The notes below the pieces were generated by a model. The model worked only from the letters and a program-made list of their open reading frames with translations. It ran no database searches and was not told the origin of the DNA. Shown one piece after another: positions 50,354 through 64,000 of a stretch of DNA of 64,000 nucleotides. Source of the DNA: Octopus sinensis (lineage: Eukaryota); assembly GCF_006345805.1 (NCBI RefSeq), contig NC_043012.1:11408001-11472000 (forward strand). Reading direction: 5' to 3'. The first letter of the stretch is position 1. Each line of letters opens with the position of its first letter. Made by a program: the position numbers and the translations under genes.

Positions 50354-50472
50354 CAAGAGGACAGTCATCGCCAGGAAGTTTGCAATCAGGACAGCAACCA
50401 TCGAATGCCATGCGACAAATTCCACAATTATCATCATTGGCAATCCATCGCCATGTGGCCACAGCTGTCCAG
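50354..50472 (-). CDS. ANAPC11: ANAPC11 coding exon 3 (requires phase-2 entry)
   Basis: ttctcattgtttcag|C TGG ACA GCT GTG...CCT CTT G|gtgggt; [39 protein letters not shown]. Confidence 0.96.
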
Positions 50473-51269
50473 CTGAAACAATGAGAAGGATCAGAAATAT
50501 ATCAATACTATTTACATAAACCAGTAGAGTGTGTATTTGTGTGTGTCTTTCTCTCTATATTTGTCCCCCACCACGCGTTGACAACCTGTGTTGGGGTGTT
50601 TATGACTCTGGAACTTAGCAGTTTAGCAAAAGAAATTAATAGAATAAGTACCAGTTTTAACCCATTCGTTACCAACCTGGCTGAAACCGGCTCTGGCTCA
50701 GTATACCAGCCTGTGGGTGCAATAAAATGAGCTCATAGGCACAATTGCGCCTGCAGGTGGGGTTTCCCCACCCTTGATTTAATAGAATCTATTTCACATG
50801 GTCTGTTATTGATATCTGTTACTGTGAATTTACTTACAAAATCCATCTTTTCTGTCAGCACACCTATGATTCCACTTCATTTCTCTTTCTCAATATGTAT
50901 TCATGAAAGAAGTAAACAATGAGCAAACCAGGAAACTAGTTCTTTCTAATAAAAATAACAGCAATGGATTTGAACTCTAGAGCTATGATTTGGAAATCAA
51001 GTACCTCAACCATCCAGCTATTTCTTTTCAACTCTCTTAACCACAAACCTTAGCAGAAACAAAAGACATACAAACTGCAACCAGGAAAAAAATATGACAC
51101 TTCACATAGTTGTAGCCTACAATAAAGATGCCACATATTAACATTGTAAATTGGGACTTACAAATTGATCCTATGTCTACCAGAGAGGACGGTCACAGTA
51201 CTTACATGATTATTTGATTGAACATCTAGAAAACAGAGGAAGAGAAGTGACATTCACATTTTTCTATCA

Positions 51270-52130
51270 GCCTCCCCTGGCACGTAAAAAGCACTATCTG
51301 TACGTGGCCGATGCCAGCGCCGCCTTGACCGGCTTCCGTGCCGGTGGCACGTAAAAACCACCAACCGATCGTGGCTGTTGCCAGCCTCCCCTGGCATGTA
51401 AAAAGCACCTTCCGTACGTGGTCGATGTCAGCGCCACCTTGACTGGCTTCCGTGCCAGTGGCATGTAAAAAGCCCCAACCAATCGTGGCCGTTGCCAGCC
51501 TCCCCTGGCACATAAAAGGCACCCACTACACTCACGGAGTGGTTGGCGTTAGGAAGGGCATCCACTGTAGAAATCCAGTGTAGAAACACTGCCAGATCAG
51601 ACTGGAGGCTGGTGCAGCCTCCTGGCTTCCCAGACCCCAGTCAAACTGTCCAACCCATGCTAGCATAGAAAACGGACGTTAAACGATGATGATGATGATT
51701 TAACGTTAGTTTTTCCATGCTGACATGAGTTGGATAGTTTGACAGGAGCTGAGCAGCTGAGGGGTTATTCAGGGCCCCTGTCTGTTTTGGCAGGATTTCT
51801 ACAGCTGGATGCCCTTCTAATGCCGTCCACTTCACAGAGTGTACTAGGTACTGTTATGCAGCACTGGCATGGGTGTTTTTTACATGGCACCAGCACCTAC
51901 AAGCCTGTGAGATTAGGGATACTCAGCTGAAGAGGATTGCAGGGGACAAGCCTGTATGCAAAGACAACTACTTACTTAGCTTGACATGTCTTTTCAAGCA
52001 CAACAAACTGCCAGGGATCTCGGTCCCCCGAAATCCCTTCTGTGAGTTCCAACGTCAGTAAATGATTTCTCACCACTTTGTCCCACGTCTTCCTGGGTCT
52101 ACCCCTTCCACATGTTCCCGCTCGAATTAT
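51270..52130. mobile_element. Two oppositely oriented RTE-type 3' fragments sharing a (GAT)n junction; the first has an internal ~110-bp duplication
   Basis: ggcacgtaaaaagcac repeats, then ggatgcccttc and ccaacccatgc motifs on both strands around 51680-51710. Confidence 0.7.
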
Positions 52131-52320: not shown

Positions 52321-52321
52321 C
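52321..52321 (-). CDS. ANAPC11: ANAPC11 single-nucleotide exon (G), coding exon 2
   Basis: Minus strand atttcttttctgtattacag|G|gtgagtag: pyrimidine tract, CAG, one base, then consensus donor GTGAGT. A+G+C gives AGC (Ser), restoring frame and the 84-aa length. Confidence 0.8.
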
Positions 52322-53536
52322 CTGTAATACAGAAAAGAAATTTCATAATCATAGATGACAATCAAAGGGAAGTATGACTTAATATTTAAATGATAGGATA
52401 GGTTAATATACATTGATACAGGAATGGTAGAGGAGAGAAAGTGCACATTTGAATGACCAAGAGAAAATACATTAAAAAATATTTATTTTCAATGTATGCA
52501 CTGACGTGGTATTGGAATAAAATAACAATGTATACTATTTATATGAAAAGGCATTAACTGTCCCCTCCTCCCTTTTTTTATGGTGCAAGAGAAACTCCTC
52601 TTTAAAAACTTTGTGCATTAACAACATAACCTGCTCTGAATGACATCAGCAGACTATCAGACACCAGTGTTTTGGCACAATTTTGTCCCATTTCCGGTAA
52701 AAGTGAAAAATGAAGGAGGTGGGGGAAATTGAAAATTTGAAAATACGATTTTTGCAAATTTTTTTTCCAGAATCGGATCTTCCATAACCAAAAACGTGAG
52801 ATTCCGTAAAAAATAAAATTAATATATATATCCATTTTACCGGAAGTTATGACGGAAAAATCGGATTTTGAGAATTTTCCGAAAGTCCCCCTCCAGGGTT
52901 GTCGGCGAGCATTTTTTTTTTTTTCATATTCGTTTTCTACATACTTGTTAATACCCACCAGGCAGGTTTTAGTTTTTTTTTTGTTCCCGGGTGAAGATCT
53001 TTATACTGACCGGGGTTTTTTTGTATGTGTTTTCGTTAACGAGTGAGGATCTTTATATTGACAATTCCCTCCAACAAATGCACCATGGTAGAGGCATTTA
53101 GAAGAATGATAGTATTTAATTAAGGTCACTGAGTGTGTAACGAAATCAGAAGCTGTGGATAAAACTGGCAGAAAATATAAAAATGCAAAAAAGTGTCAAC
53201 AGAAGAGTTTGAACGGTTGACAGCAAATGAGACACAAATCTCTTCAGCGGAAACAGAAAAGTGTCTTGAAGGGAGTAGAGACAAGTGGATGTGCAAAAGA
53301 AACCCTAATCCTTGTGAAACATGTTAAATGTGAACGAAAATCAGAATTTAGGATCAGAGAGAAAAAACTTCAATAAAAAGTGAAGAATCTGATTCTACTT
53401 TATAATTCTTCTTTTTTACGCAATATTTCCAACCCTGGGCTTCTAAATGTAAATTCATTTGTCCAATACAAATGCCACAGTGTACCATATCTTCATCTAT
53501 TTCTATAAAATAAATGAAATAAAAGGAAATCCTTAC

Positions 53537-53555
53537 TTTTTACTTTCACCTTCAT
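53537..53555 (-). CDS. ANAPC11: ANAPC11 first coding exon (19 nt, phase 1)
   Basis: aaaagATG AAG GTG AAA GTA AAA A|gtaagg gives MKVKVK, matching the conserved APC11 start MKVKIK. Confidence 0.9.
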
Positions 53556-53559
53556 CTTT

Positions 53560-53900
53560 TTTAACTCATGCAGCCCGCCATTGTTATCAGAATCAGTTTT
53601 AAAACAAGTCGTAGTTGCGTATCTCGAAACAAAACTAGACATATTTATATATATACGTTCAGTATTAATTATAATATAATAACACATTTAAATAGTACAT
53701 TAAAAAATAATGACATTAAACTAGAAAGTAAAATTTTAATACTAAACTAAATATAAACACTTCTCTGAAAACTGTAAAAATGGCGGTTTTTATTTTTGTT
53801 TTCATAAAAATTGTTTGAAAGTTTGTGATTTTGACTTCGTCTTCCACCGCTGCTGGATTATTTAATTATTTAGGTATTTCATACAGGTACTTGGTTATTT
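53560..53900. promoter_or_regulatory. Probable bidirectional promoter of ANAPC11 (-) and DIS3L (+)
   Basis: Lies just upstream of the ANAPC11 ATG; divergent ATGGCG (YY1-like) motifs at 53576-53581 (-) and 53777-53786 (+); candidate DIS3L 5'UTR donors near 53875-53890; CpGs retained locally. Confidence 0.5.
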
Positions 53901-57989: not shown

Positions 57990-58188
57990 ATGACTGCCGA
58001 AGAAAGTGATGACTTTGAGAAAGCCCCATCCACCACCTCTATATCCCAGATTTCCAGAATAAACAGACAGTTCCGGCTGAAGTCGAACCGGAAAAGCAAT
58101 ATTATTAGTATGGTACAAGAACTCTATCTTCGAAAAGATGTTCCTTGCAAAAGTCTTTTATGCCAGAACAATTGCACATCGAATAAAG
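57990..58188 (+). CDS. DIS3L: DIS3L first coding exon
   Basis: Acceptor ttaacag ends at 57967; MTAEES...SMVQELYLRKDVPCKSLLCQNNC matches the YLRxxVPCxSxxC Cys-rich motif; donor G|gtaagt. Confidence 0.88.
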
Positions 58189-58369
58189 GTAAGTGTGGAT
58201 GGGTTGGTTTGATCTTTTGTTTTCTTTTTTAATTGTTTCACTCCATATGTGGCCAAGCTGGGGCACCACCTGCATGTCTTAATCATCTCAAACCTAGTAC
58301 TTACTTTGTCAATCTCTATTTGACAAATGGCTAAGTTACCTTTTTGACATATAGGTGTAGGAGTGGCTT

Positions 58370-58700
58370 TAGTCGAGCAAATCGACCCCAGGACTTTTTC
58401 TTTGGAAACCTAGTACTTATTCCATCTGTCTTTTGCCGAACCGCTAAGTCAGGGGGATGTAAACACACCACCATCAGTTGTCAAGCGATGTTGGGGGGAC
58501 AAACACAGACACACAAACATATACACACACATACATATATACGACGGGCTTCTTTCAGTTACTGTCTACCAAATCCACTCACAAGGCTTTGGTCGGCCCG
58601 AGGCTATAATAGAAGACACTTGCCCAGGGTGCCACGCAGTGGGACTGAACCCAGAACCATGTGGTTGGTAAGCAAGCTACTTACCACACAGCCACTCCTG
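58370..58700 (-). mobile_element. SINE family A, intronic
   Basis: Same family on the reverse strand. Confidence 0.85.
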
Positions 58701-59613
58701 TCTGAGATAATTTATTGTTTATTTGATTTTAATTCTTTAGAGTAGTAAATGTAATTTCTGGAGGTGAAACATGTTTAATATTTGGCCTCACTGAGGAGAT
58801 GACAAGAGACTGAGAATTCTGGCAATTTGCTGTACTTGTAAATACATGTCAAGCTAAGTAAAACCATGGCCATCCAGATGTACAGTCAAGTCCTTTATGA
58901 CCCATGCTGGCACCACATAAAAAGCCCTTGTACCTGCGTCACATAAAAACCATTCATGTAAATAGCATTTGTACTAGAATCACGTAAAACTATCTGTCCA
59001 GTGCTATGTAGTAAAAGCCCCAAGTACACTCTGTAAAGTGATTGGCATTAGAAGGGCATCCAGCCAAAGAAATTAGGCCGAAACAGACAGTTGGAGCCTG
59101 GGCAGCTCTCCAGCTGGCCAGCTGCTGCCAAATTGTCCAACCCATGCCAGCATAGAAAACAGACGTTAAATGATGATGATGATGATACATATCCAGGAAT
59201 AAAACACTTGAGGATGTCATGTACATATCATCATCATCATCATTATGATCATTATCATTTTTATATCTACTTTCCATGTTGACATGGGTTAGCTGGGTTG
59301 TCACAGTCCAAGGCAGGTCTTACTTAGAGTTACTGATCTCTTAGACGGGTCTAAGGATCACGTCTCACTTGATGGTAAATATTTAGTGTGGTATCTATGG
59401 TTGGATTTCATTCTAACCACCAACTTTATAGAGTATGTAATGGTTCATTGCTGAGTTATGACCCCAGCAATAGAGAGAGGTTGCTTGACGATGTTAATAT
59501 TTTAAAATATTCCATCTCTATAGGGGAAGCTTATAATCCCGAATATTATAGTTCTATGATTGTTGTTGTCTGAAAATATTACTTATTTTTCTATTTTGTT
59601 CTTTTTTCCACAG

Positions 59614-59747
59614 AAAATGATGTATTCCTATCATTGGATGTTTCACATTATGTTGTACTGGATAGCCAGATATGCAGGGACTATTTGGAAATATGGGAAA
59701 CACCAGAGATAAAAGGAATTATATTCCCCCAAACTATTGTTAACAGT
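59614..59747 (+). CDS. DIS3L: DIS3L coding exon 2 (PIN domain)
   Basis: ttccacag|AA AAT...AAC AGT|gtaagt; LDVSHYVVLDSQICRDYLEIWETPEIKGIIFPQT aligns with recalled human DIS3L [33 protein letters not shown]. Confidence 0.93.
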
Positions 59748-61157
59748 GTAAGTTTTTCTTTTATTATGTGTAAATACAAATCTACACGTGTGTAGTTATT
59801 GAAAATCTGCTTCAACAAATTCCATGGAGAAGTGATGTTAAATGATGATGATGGTGATGATGATGATATATATACATACATATATGTATGTGTATATATA
59901 TGTGTGTGTGTGTGTGTGTTGTGTGTCATAAGTCCAAAACATTGCCTTTTCAGAAAACAAAAAAGTAGTTTCACCATTCCATTACTGTTTACATTAGCAA
60001 CAGTTTCAGCTTAACAATAATACTTTGTTGGGTGCATAAAATCGTAACTCCATGCATGTATGATATTTTTAGTCAGAAATATTTTTGCAAAACCGTCGTA
60101 TGTGGGACTAACTACACTTTTGAAAATGCTAAACCATTGTACTACACCTTGACAGTTTCATATCTTGGCATCTGAAGCAGCTGGAGATACGATAGGTTGA
60201 CCAAAAGAACCAGCTTTTGGAAGCAAAATAAAATATTGGAAAAAATGCATTTGGCCAAGTTTGGACATACAACAGTTTAACATAACAGCAATGATGTATA
60301 TATATGTGGGTGTATATATATATATATATAAACAATTGCAGCGTGGAAGGTGTTTATAAGCCATTTAAAAACACACAAAGACCGTTAGATTCACTTCAAC
60401 ATTAAAATTTAATTTACCAAAATATTTTCGTTGCTTTGAGACCGCGACCTGATCACTGACTATATTGTGGAGGTGTGTGGATTAGTGGTTAGGATGTTGG
60501 GCTCATGATCATTGTGGTTTCAATTCCTGGACTAGGCAATGCATTGTGTTCTTGAGCAAATCACTTCATTTCACGTTGCTCCAGTCCACTCAGTTTGCAA
60601 AAAGGAGTAATCCTACAATGGACTGGCATCCCATCCAGCTGGGGAATGTATACACCATGAAACCAAGAAATCAGCTCTTATGAGTCACCATGACTCAAGA
60701 AGGTAACTTTACCTTTGTGTATGTATATTACTTCTATTCTTTTACTGGTTCTCCTTCCATTTAGCTTTTGCCATGGTGATAAACTGGCATCAAAATACAA
60801 AAAATTCTACTGATGGCAATATTCTTTTACAGGCCATTCTGTAGCATTGCATGTTGATTATATCAAGTGCTCTACTTATTTTTATTGAGTGTTACTTATT
60901 TTATCAGCCTCTTACAAGGATGAAAAACAAAGGTAACCTTAGTGAGATTTGAACTTGGAATGAAAAATGCTGGAACAAATCCCCACATGACATTTGGTTT
61001 GATGCTGTACTGATCCTATTAAAAGTGTTTCATCTTCAGAGTTGAGCTTCACTCTCTTCAAGACTATAATCATATTAGCAATGCTTGTCTGTTTTGTAAT
61101 GGAGAAGATACGTTACATGTTATGAAAGTAAAATGTAATAATTTGTTCTTCACTTAG

Positions 61158-61309
61158 GTCCAGTATGAAGGTAACAGCCGTCAGGTGAAACGACTGAAGG
61201 CCCTCCTGGATGATCCTCGTAAAGGATCAGTGTTGTTCTGTAATGAGTTTCATGAAGATGTGTATTGTGAAAGACAACCAAAAGAACCAACATCAGAATG
61301 GCAAACTAA
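61158..61309 (+). CDS. DIS3L: DIS3L coding exon 3
   Basis: cacttag|GTC CAG...ACT AA|gtaagc; VQYEGNSRQVKRLKALLDDPRKGSVLFCNEFHEDVYCERQPKEPTSEWQT. Confidence 0.93.
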
Positions 61310-61605
61310 GTAAGCTGCTCTGTTTGTCTGTCCGTCTGTCCATCCCAAACACTTCTCTCTCTCCCAAATACAGCCAGTATTTGTAAGCTTATCTTACTAA
61401 ATACAACTAATACCGATAAACTTTTCTTTTTTTTCCCCCTTCATATTTTCTTCTTCTTCTTCCTCTTCTTCCATTTCTTTCTTCATTATCTGATCTCCCT
61501 GTCTGTAGAATCCTCTGCTCCAAGTTCTCAAAAGCTTTTTTCCTTTTAACTATCATGTTCTAATTAGTCTTGCTTTTGTTTCTTTTCTCCTTGTACCATT
61601 CCTAG

Positions 61606-61687
61606 GTGTTGCTACAAAGTCTCAGAATGGTATTACAACCACCTAAATGGTCAAATGCCTATTATAATGGTGACTGATAATACGAAG
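61606..61687 (+). CDS. DIS3L: DIS3L coding exon 4
   Basis: cctag|G TGT...ACG AAG|gtgagt; CCYKVSEWYYNHLNGQMPIIMVTDNTK. Confidence 0.93.
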
Positions 61688-62036
61688 GTGAGTTGCCGAT
61701 CTCTTTCAGTACCTCAACATCCAATCAAACTATAAAATGGCTTTTCCCTTTTCTGTATTTGTAAATTAATATTCTGTGTCTCAGTCTTCAGCATCCTCCT
61801 TGATAACTCTGTTCATAGATGCATTGAATCAATCAAGATTTTTTAAAGATCTTCTTGGATCCATACATGTGATAGACTGGTTGTTGCTGTTGAGTAAAAG
61901 AAGAAAAAAAGTTCTCTACGTTTGTTTGAGAAACTGTATCTTTTAAAACAACTTAAGAACCTTCAGTGATTGTGTAAATACTAGGAACGAGATTTTTCTT
62001 CATGACCATATTTTACAAAATACATCTTAGCAGAAA

Positions 62037-62248
62037 TTAACCCCTAGCAGATGGAAAACGGTACTGACTGCATTGAAATACTGTGTGTGAGCAGTACAAT
62101 GTCTCGTTCTGTGCTGCACCTTGTTTTCAAATACACCACACTGTAAAGACATAAAATTGTTTGTTTGAAAGATTATGTAGTTACTAAACGGCCTAATACC
62201 AGTACACAGCACCGACTGTCAGTACTAAATCTGTCTGCAAGGGGTTAA
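62037..62248. mobile_element. TTAA-flanked MITE (piggyBac-type)
   Basis: ttaacccctagcag ... ctgcaaggggttaa. Confidence 0.65.
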
Positions 62249-62893
62249 GGATAAATTACGTGGCACTTCGTAAAGAATTCTAGTGTTGGCTTATGTAATT
62301 TTTGATATTCATAAGATACTGGTTATATTTACTGTGAAGTTAATTATTTCTTCTGTGCTTCTCTGTCTTTTTCTAAATGCTTCTGCTCATTCAAACATCG
62401 ATTGCTATGCCATCATGTTGTTTTTACCAGCTTGCTAAATAGCAAAATAAGTTAATATTTTGGCCAGGAAACCATGGGAAACTGTATTTCACAAGGGTTT
62501 TTGTGGTTTTTATTAAGAAAATAAAAACTCTTTGAACTGATCAAATGCTTTATATATTTACATTTTTCTCAATTACTCTTGTATTATCTCATGGCTTTGA
62601 AATTTTGAAAAATGTGATTGTTTAGTTTCAGAATGACAAAGTAAGGTAGTTTTGGGAGGCTGGATCTGACCACTTTTAACATAAAACAGATGGAATATTT
62701 GGGCTGGGTATGGCTGGTTTGAATGACGAAGGGCTAAAACTTAGGTGCACAGCCAAGTTTATTTCTCTAAAATCAGTCACTGCAGAACTTCTTGATTCTA
62801 TAGAATCCACTTTGAAAAAAAGCATGATTTGTAACAGTGATTGGATTCACTTAATTAATTATATGTGACTAATTACTTTTGTTGGTCTTTCAG

Positions 62894-63035
62894 ATGATTG
62901 AAGAATATGGATGCAAAACTTTGAACGTCTTTGTTTTATCAATGGAAGACTACATGAATAACTTTTGGGAGGAACTTCCAGGAATAATTGATTTGTACGC
63001 GTCTCTTCGTGCATCTTTAGACAGTAAACAAAAAG
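62894..63035 (+). CDS. DIS3L: DIS3L coding exon 5
   Basis: ctttcag|ATG ATT...AAA G|gtaaat; MIEEYGCKTLNVFVLSMEDYMNNFWEELPGIIDLYASLRASLDSKQK. Confidence 0.92.
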
Positions 63036-63207
63036 GTAAATGAATGGTTGACCTTTTCCCTCTGTCTGTCTGTCTGTCTGTCATTGTCAGGTGTCATTGC
63101 TGCATATGAACATAGAACTGCTCTAGATTCCAAACCAGGAACCTTTGTTTCTAAGCCATATATTTCGTTTGAATCATTTACTATTATGCTGGTGACAAAG
63201 TTGGAGC

Positions 63208-63582
63208 TGAGGAGTGGTAAGTAGCTTGCTTACCAACCACATGGTTCCGGGTTCAATCCCACTGCGTGGCACCTTGGGCAAGTGTCTTCTACTATAGCCT
63301 GTGAGTGGATTTGGTAGACGGAAACTGAAAGAAGTCTGTTGTATATATATGTATATATATATATATATATATGTGTGTATGTATATATATATATATATAT
63401 GTATGGGTGTATATGTTTTTGTGCATGTTTTTTTCCCCCCAACATCGTTTAGCAAAAGAGGCTGATAGAATAAGCACTAGGCTTACAAAGAATAAGTCCT
63501 GGGGTCGATTTGCTCGACTAAAAGCGGTGCTCCAGCATGGCCACATTCAAATGGCTGAAACAAGTAAAAGAGTAAAGAGTAA
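63208..63582 (+). mobile_element. SINE family A, intronic, with internal deletions
   Basis: Same head and tail as the other copies. Confidence 0.85.
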
Positions 63583-63709
63583 AAGATATATATATATATA
63601 CACACACACATACATATATACTTATATATACATGTTACTTACTTTTATATTAATTTTCTTTTTGGATTGTGTATTTATTTTCTTTTTTCCAATTTTCTTG
63701 TCTTTTCAG

Positions 63710-63839
63710 GAACAGAATATTTGGGATATCTTCCAATGCACTGTCTTGAGAGTGGTGTCAAAACTGGTCTCTTCATAAAGGGACACTTAAATGTCAACAA
63801 ACATGATGCTCAGAGAGAAGCTTTTCTACAGCGTAGCAG
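63710..63839 (+). CDS. DIS3L: DIS3L coding exon 6 (start of cold-shock domain); the gene continues beyond the window
   Basis: cttttcag|GA ACA...AGC AG|gtcagt; GTEYLGYLPMHCLESGVKTGLFIKGHLNVNKHDAQREAF. Confidence 0.9.
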
Positions 63840-64000
63840 GTCAGTCCACTTATAATTGTATACATGTAGCATTGATCTCCATGTTCCCTACATCTATGTG
63901 TGTATCTGTGTATATATTTGTAAGATTGCGAGTTTGATACGTGGTAGTACATTGTTTTTCTTGAGTAAGACACTTTGTTTCATGCTGCTCCAGCCCACTC

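Follow-up and report, generated by a model that had tools for sequence, protein, structure and literature searches.

APC11 locus and gene structure in Octopus sinensis

The window analysed here, a stretch of 64,000 nucleotides (nt) from Octopus sinensis (assembly GCA_006345805.1, chromosome CM016874.1, with every base matching over the 26 kb compared), carries on its minus strand the gene for APC11, an essential cell-cycle protein and RING-H2 subunit. The gene very likely comprises four coding exons, the second of which is a single G at position 52321 (about 11,460,321 on CM016874.1), flanked by two GT-AG introns. With human APC11 as the tblastn query, two large coding exons are recovered, at 50471-50355 and 47759-47646. 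A short coding exon 1 lies upstream of them and encodes MKVKVK together with the first base of codon 7 (Table 1). As a query, APC11 is 81-95% identical in amino acid (aa) sequence to animal APC11 proteins, the family being matched over its full length, and the precomputed Pfam matches of these proteins are PF12861 and PF12678.

Exon 1 closes in phase 1, while exon 2 opens with the third base of codon 7 and needs phase 2, so that joining the two exons directly leaves the frame exactly one nucleotide short. An earlier sequence-only reading of the window had described this mismatch, with a 19-nt phase-1 exon 1, a phase-2 exon 2 and a frame lost after 6 codons, and all three can be read in the sequence. 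No further GT follows exon 1 within the 44 nt that precede the first in-frame stop, and therefore no downstream exon-1 donor is able to mend the frame. When exon 1, the G at 52321, exon 2 and exon 3 are joined, the coding sequence (CDS) has 255 nt and encodes MKVKVKSWTAV...QEWKFKE, 84 aa with no internal stop. When the G is omitted, the frame is lost after codon 6 (Lys6), yielding a 59-aa nonsense peptide that stops in the last exon. The same reading had placed the lone base within ttctgtattacag/G/gtgagtag (slashes mark splice boundaries), between introns of 1215 and 1848 nt and with an 84-aa product; coordinates and translation agree with it.

The NCBI protein of this locus, XP_029646490.2 (P0001), is 100% identical to the query over the whole query length and carries the same Pfam matches. 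It reads ...KKMKVKVK-S-WTAV across the junction and bears no low-quality flag. P0001 begins at an upstream in-frame ATG at 53642 and thereby gains 29 additional residues (MSSFVSRYATTTCFKTDSDNNGGLHELKK; window 53556-53642, minus strand) without counterpart in orthologues. This extension is probably translated 5' untranslated region, the true start being the ATG at 53555.

Quality of the one-base site at 52321

The score given to each AG-N-GT site of the 3064-nt intron between exons 1 and 2 combined acceptor position -3, a pyrimidine tract of 16 nt, and donor positions -1 (the isolated base) and +3 to +6. Position 52321 ranks first among the 10 sites, with 12.95 vs -2.85 for the runner-up, and among 1000 versions of the intron shuffled with dinucleotides preserved, only 1 contains a site that equals it; the earlier claim that this site stands out from all others is borne out. 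The loose motif AGNGTRRG is common (the probability of at least one occurrence in the octopus intron is 0.44), and its presence was dropped as a statistic for that reason in favour of the maximum-score shuffle test. It is the quality of the site, not the presence of the motif, that sets 52321 apart. On a second score, the single G is also the best of all stop-free, frame-restoring microexons of up to 40 nt (10.98).

Another in-frame route could in principle dominate: a 7-nt microexon, an acceptor 8 nt inside exon 2, or another isolated G at 50772 (Table 1). The frame stays open in all three, and the signals of the 7-nt exon are decent (7.93). Such a route is nevertheless very unlikely. It conflicts with the one-residue spacing that orthologues keep ahead of the invariant Trp8 and with the single Ser of P0001, and the site at 52321 scores higher than both the 7-nt exon (10.98 vs 7.93) and the next AG-N-GT (12.95 vs -2.85). 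The gene of the bivalve Dreissena, moreover, is without an internal exon-2 acceptor. Internal AGs like that of octopus exon 2 are present in Batillaria, Bulinus and Glandiceps and absent in Dreissena.

A second donor, 15 nt downstream of the lone G, had also been proposed, and both this donor and the immediate AGG TGA stop of the 16-nt exon that it would define are confirmed in the sequence. Its action as a switch to nonsense-mediated decay is speculation, which the sequence would fit.

Position 52321 lies in unique sequence between two intron repeat blocks, which rules out its being part of a repeat or transposon. The blocks themselves represent interspersed repeats, as blastn matches to other parts of the window overlap there, up to 9 in 51268-52112 and up to 6 in 50529-50654; tandem units of about 120 nt (ccagcctcccctggcacgtaaaaagcac...) can be recognized by eye within 51260-51520. 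The RNA secondary structure around 52321 shows nothing unusual (z = +1.14, 176 of 200 shuffles folding at least equally well).

Table 1 Features of the octopus APC11 locus and corresponding sites in other animal genomes. Slashes mark splice boundaries.
Feature	Sequence	Positions	Strand	Description
APC11 coding exon 1	window	53555-53537	minus	19 nt, ATGAAGGTGAAAGTAAAAA; MKVKVK + first base of codon 7; donor gtaagg; phase 1
Exon 1-exon 2 intron, whole	window	53536-50473	minus	3064 nt
Intron 1a, upstream of the lone G	window	53536-52322	minus	1215 nt; gtaagg...attacag
Acceptor and pyrimidine tract of the candidate one-base exon	window	52322-52341	minus	atttcttttctgtattacag; 68% pyrimidines; C at -3
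Candidate one-base exon, G	window	52321	minus	second base of codon 7 (A-G-C, Ser); context ttctgtattacag/G/gtgagtag
Donor of the candidate one-base exon	window	52320-52313	minus	gtgagtag; predicted AAG/GTGAGT after ligation of exon 1
Intron 1b, downstream of the lone G	window	52320-50473	minus	1848 nt; gtgagt...tgtttcag; repeat blocks 51268-52112 and 50529-50654
Coding exon 2	window	50472-50354	minus	tgtttcag/C TGG ACA GCT ... CTT G; third base of codon 7 to first base of codon 47; needs phase 2
Coding exon 3	window	47758-47643	minus	includes TGA stop
Runner-up frame-restoring microexon	window	52230-52224	minus	ctacag/CCAAGAG/gtaaga; 7 nt; score 7.93 vs 10.98; K-TKS-W, 86 aa
Second donor, 15 nt downstream of the lone G	window	52305-52300	minus	tttg/gtaaga; candidate 16-nt exon 52321-52306; immediate in-frame stop AGG TGA
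Other isolated G in the intron	window	50772	minus	aag/G/gtgggg; weaker
Alternative acceptor inside exon 2	window	50465-50472	minus	ctggacag/CT, 8 nt in; in frame from exon 1; MKVKVK-T-VATW without Trp8, 81 aa
DIS3-like exonuclease gene	window	57990-64000	plus	head to head with APC11
Candidate site, Batillaria attramentaria (caenogastropod)	L002			intron 3.1 kb; gcag/G/gtaagc
Candidate site, Dreissena polymorpha (bivalve)	L003			intron 20.3 kb; acag/G/gtgagt
Candidate site, Bulinus truncatus (heterobranch gastropod)	L006			intron 1.4 kb; aaag/G/gtaggt
Candidate site, Glandiceps talaboti (hemichordate)	L007			intron 1.6 kb; gcag/G/gtgagt
Candidate site, Pocillopora verrucosa (coral)	L009			intron 0.74 kb; tcag/A/gtgagt
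Candidate site, Porites evermanni (coral)	L011			intron 2.9 kb; aaag/A/gtaagc
Junction of exons 1 and 2, beetle	L005	6001-6343		A/gt...ag/AT TGG
Junction of exons 1 and 2, cockroach	L010	10457-10565		A/gt...ag/GT TGG

The same layout in other animal genomes

The APC11 loci of other species were retrieved via annotated proteins. Six further animal genomes, those of three molluscs, a hemichordate and two corals (Table 1), share the octopus layout: a 19-nt first coding exon (...A/GT or ...C/GT) ends in phase 1, and exon 2 starts one base ahead of TGG. In all six, the candidate is the top AG-N-GT site of its intron by the scores applied. A site of equal quality arises in shuffled introns with a fraction of 0.26 in Batillaria, 0.04 in Dreissena, 0.09 in Bulinus, 0.07 in Glandiceps and 0.009 in Pocillopora, and the Fisher-combined p over these five genomes, octopus excluded, is 0.0017. 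Porites was scored by a simpler scan only and stands outside the maximum-score shuffle test. In both corals the isolated base is A, located about 190-200 nt downstream of exon 1.

The recurrence of the deficit bears directly on whether the octopus assembly is in error, with a true genome one base longer (for example, six As ending exon 1) and one ordinary intron. The five-A run that closes exon 1 is an indel-prone place in a long-read assembly. The identical deficit, however, occurs in seven independent animal assemblies from three phyla, with differing flanking sequence, and this excludes an assembly error. The deficit is also present in the Arabidopsis gene, which Guo and Liu sequenced anew (PMC4674806). 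An assembly indel is thus effectively refuted by the comparative evidence and retains a negligible probability; the comparison of APC11 gene structures across animals and a plant, which the sequence-only reading had suggested, settles this point through the six further animal genomes and Arabidopsis.

Two insects serve as controls. The beetle and the cockroach keep the 19-nt exon 1, followed by a single phase-1 intron of about 85 nt with no deficit. Since the insects show a plain phase-1 intron, the one-base deficit elsewhere is not an artefact of how the exon is read. Judged from these junctions, the insects look as if they had lost the downstream intron, the lone base being fused to exon 2. 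The gene of the spider Stegodyphus (P0003, L004), tried as a further comparison, is intronless and uninformative on the intron.

Conservation extends to the protein and to the next intron. The 19-nt MKVKxK exon keeps its position and sequence in all compared loci that have this exon, including those of beetle, cockroach and Arabidopsis, and the APC11 N-terminus MKVK(I/V)K is conserved from plants to mammals. In orthologous proteins from plants to vertebrates, position 6 and the invariant Trp8 are separated by exactly one residue. The Arion vulgaris protein P0020, which we take to derive from a transcriptome, reads MALKVKIK-S-WTGV, and its relative Bulinus has the A / G / C arrangement in the genome. 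The second intron interrupts codon 47 in phase 1 (octopus CTT G/gt), and the same boundary is found in the other molluscs, Glandiceps, both corals and the cockroach; the beetle has no second intron.

The conserved first exon also speaks to the idea that the octopus MKVKVK exon is unused and that translation starts in another 5' exon ending in phase 2. A precedent is the Dreissena X1 model (P0002), which joins an upstream ...AG to C TGG. This is extremely unlikely for octopus, given that the MKVKxK exon is conserved, that MKVK(I/V)K is retained from plants to mammals and that P0001 includes it.

A search of the APC11 protein clusters for transcript-derived coral, hemichordate or octopus proteins found none. 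The coral cluster has 51-aa Logan/ENA members, which were set aside as transcript evidence because they resemble genomic open reading frames that read through unspliced sequence; Pocillopora exon 1, when read in the P0244 frame, continues into its intron until a stop codon.

The neighbourhood of APC11 was also recorded. In octopus, a DIS3-like exonuclease gene is arranged head to head with APC11 at a distance of 4.4 kb; its 1063-aa product has precomputed Pfam Rrp44, RNB and OB domains. A protein search with the 66-aa peptide of its first exon (57990-58187), aimed at other octopods, returned no candidate and missed even the protein of O. sinensis. A Dpy-30-domain gene is directly upstream of APC11 in both insects (L005, L010), both corals (L009, L011) have frataxin upstream and UBAP2 downstream, and a NUDIX gene is found near APC11 in Dreissena (L003) and Pocillopora.

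Public gene models at the junction

Animal APC11 is systematically misannotated at this spot (loci L002, L003, L006, L007, L009 and L011; proteins P0002, P0008, P0009, P0069, P0070, P0073, P0074, P0087 and P0241-P0248). Two models, P0008 of Batillaria and the RefSeq model P0073 of Pocillopora, begin at a spurious intronic ATG and have the candidate base as the last of their first coding exon; those pipelines therefore used its donor. The Glandiceps and Acropora models move the exon-1 donor by +4 nt, which gives 85-aa proteins with one extra residue. In Dreissena, the models use other exons: X1 takes the upstream exon mentioned above, and X2 has an additional cassette exon (L003, 23147-23251). 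The Pocillopora damicornis model joins exon 1 straight to exon 2 by reading exon 1 in another frame. Many further animal and plant models have a false N-terminus up to Trp8.

Source of the missing base and proposed splicing route

The missing base could also come from slipped, non-canonical splicing of a single 3064-nt intron, in which the G is taken from the exon-1 donor (TA...AG) or from the exon-2 acceptor (GT...CA) and position 52321 is irrelevant. For each of the five bilaterian genomes that show the deficit, G can be the missing base, both slips supply G, and an aligner or annotation pipeline could yield the Ser of P0001 in this way. We regard slipping as very unlikely. It requires TA-AG or GT-CA introns, which to our knowledge are essentially unknown for the major spliceosome. 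It leaves unexplained the top-ranked AG/N/GTRRG site in each intron, the donor use there by two gene models, and the candidate A that both corals have about equally far from exon 1, a base that neither slip could supply. In the homologous plant gene, mutation of the isolated base alters the complementary DNA (cDNA) (PMC4674806).

Several points weigh against a one-base exon at 52321. The G in the octopus mRNA, its origin from 52321 and the order of the splicing steps are predictions from the genomic sequence, and the G of the exon-1 donor (AAAAAG/taagg) or of the exon-2 acceptor (tttca/GCTGG) would yield an identical mRNA. Ser7 in P0001 shows that the pipeline reached the same residue, not that 52321 supplied it. 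The score weights follow a rough metazoan consensus, not a trained model, and the candidate sites of Batillaria and Bulinus are individually weak, as their shuffle fractions indicate (0.26 and 0.09). The octopod sampling consists of O. sinensis alone, and the +4-nt donor may be the route taken in Glandiceps and Acropora.

In the preferred four-exon structure, with the single G at 52321 as the second exon, the octopus pre-mRNA would undergo two GT-AG reactions in succession around this base. Acceptor and donor complexes cannot occupy one nucleotide at once. Because two complexes cannot share so few nucleotides, introns 1a and 1b would have to be removed one after the other. The non-simultaneity of both reactions is likewise argued in PMC4674806. 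If intron 1a is removed first, exon 1 (...AAAAA), the G and the following GTGAGT would combine into AAG/GTGAGT, a consensus 5' splice site, from which intron 1b could then be excised. Compared with the unspliced AGG/GTGAGT, the ligated AAG/GTGAGT comes nearer to the 5' splice-site consensus, and the same gain on ligation is seen in the four other bilaterian genomes, exon 1 ending in AAAA in each. This route would resemble recursive splicing with one base retained; the reverse order, with intron 1b removed first, is also conceivable. G is expected to be the favoured lone base, as it fits both acceptor +1 and donor -1, and the same point is made for Fusarium (PMC12940212).

The predicted product joins AAA-AGC-TGG (Lys6-Ser7-Trp8) into the canonical 84-aa RING-H2 subunit. 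Junction reads with the G would contain GTAAAAAGCTGGACAGCT and AAAAAGCTGG, and those without it GTAAAAACTGGACAGCT; the 7-nt exon would give GTAAAAACCAAGAGCTGG and the internal exon-2 acceptor GTAAAAACTGTGGCC.

Evolutionary origin

Arabidopsis APC11 (At3g05870) contains a constitutive one-base exon, A, located 333 nt into the intron, for which sequenced cDNA and mutagenesis gave the proof (Guo and Liu 2015, PMC4674806). Replacement of this A by T, G or TT, or its deletion, altered the cDNA accordingly, and an old annotation of the gene had moved the donor by +10 nt (PMC4674806). The exon is conserved in land plants, where it is said to have 'evolved in early plants', and plant VPS55 likewise has a 1-nt microexon (Yu et al. 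2022, PMC8831610). The codon position of the plant exon was read from the Arabidopsis locus L008, reached via the A. suecica protein P0183. Exon 1 of L008 is ATGAAAGTCAAGATCTTGC/gtatcc, 19 nt long, its isolated base lies in cccaaaaaaacag/A/gtaagttcc, in agreement with the mutagenesis primers of Guo and Liu, and exon 2 begins ggaatag/A TGG CAT. The plant one-base exon is therefore nucleotide 20 of the CDS and the middle base of codon 7, with phase-1 and phase-2 flanks, a position identical to that in octopus. The sequence-only reading had described the Arabidopsis exon correctly, as phase 1 and near the N-terminus, and the positional match is closer than it had stated. The second intron of L008 (CTA A/gt) also falls in codon 47 in phase 1, as in octopus.

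The octopus one-base exon is very likely real and probably ancient, its layout homologous to that of the plant APC11 exon. Between the alternatives named at the outset, an ancient exon or convergence, the second intron that plant and animals share at codon 47 in phase 1 favours common ancestry, alongside the layout found in the six further animal genomes. On balance, a single origin is the likelier history, with introns at CDS 19/20 and 20/21 already present in the last common ancestor of plants and animals, more than 1 billion years ago. The strength of this statement reflects the few lineages sampled, namely molluscs, a hemichordate, corals, insects, a spider and Arabidopsis. With a single origin, both introns would have persisted in land plants, corals, molluscs and hemichordates, and the downstream intron, or every intron, would have disappeared from insects, spiders and most monocots. 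The alternative is parallel gain of both introns at identical positions, one version of which is the rescue scenario of PMC12940212.

In the literature searched, no animal one-base exon was found, and the sequence-only reading was likewise aware of no report in animals: the nuclear cases there are from plants (APC11, VPS55) and Fusarium, and other uses of the term are mitochondrial or unrelated. The animal microexon literature, as searched, stops at about 3 nt. What is new is thus an animal case, at a position identical in the plant and animal genes. If correct, the animal spliceosome can define an exon that offers no exonic sequence to bind, and the origin of the exon is pushed toward the eukaryote root, contradicting the statement that it 'evolved in early plants' (PMC8831610). 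Given a single origin, this would be the smallest exon known and would rank among the oldest that are conserved, and every spliceosome across that span would be able to handle a one-base exon. The octopus gene would offer a natural substrate for studies of sequential, recursive-like splicing. The exon would also account for the systematic annotation error in animal APC11, with its false N-termini, shifted donors and frame tricks. For annotators, a phase-1 exon end that meets a phase-2 start with one base missing is a reason to look for AG-N-GT.

Comparison with known systems

The closest counterpart is plant APC11. The gene is the same, exon 1 has 19 nt, the isolated base is CDS nucleotide 20 within AG/N/GT, and exon 2 starts one base ahead of Trp8; annotation errors are of the same kinds as well (donors moved by +10 or +4 nt, false N-termini). 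The base, however, is A (Gln) in the plant and G (Ser) in octopus, and molluscs have flanking introns 10 to 100 times longer than those of the plant. The exon of the plant is proven by cDNA and mutagenesis, whereas the octopus exon is known from sequence and comparison. The animal data argue for an origin older than the one 'in early plants' given by Yu et al. (PMC8831610).

One-base exons also occur in the Fusarium CYP621A P450 genes, and the paper on them states that just one previous study had described such an exon (Nelson and Syed 2026, PMC12940212). In these genes and in plant VPS55, as in octopus, a mismatch between phase 1 and phase 2 is rescued by an intronic AG-G-GT. The genes are unrelated to APC11 and lineage-restricted, and the fungal introns total 139 nt.

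Recursive splice sites (ratchet points) are known from long Drosophila and vertebrate introns, which are removed in two steps. At a ratchet point, as at 52321, an acceptor abuts a donor within a long intron, and the first ligation restores a 5' splice site, predicted to be AAG/GTGAGT in octopus. A ratchet point AG/GT retains nothing, whereas the octopus site would keep one G between AG and GT, which is required for the frame. The recursive splicing model is discussed for a one-base exon in PMC4674806.

Animal microexons (3-27 nt in neuronal genes; 3 nt, for example, in Drosophila hth, PMC7392893) resemble the octopus case in being very short internal exons missed by standard aligners and annotators. 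They are multiples of 3 nt, alternative and regulatory, whereas the octopus exon would be 1 nt long, presumably constitutive, and needed for a functional protein.

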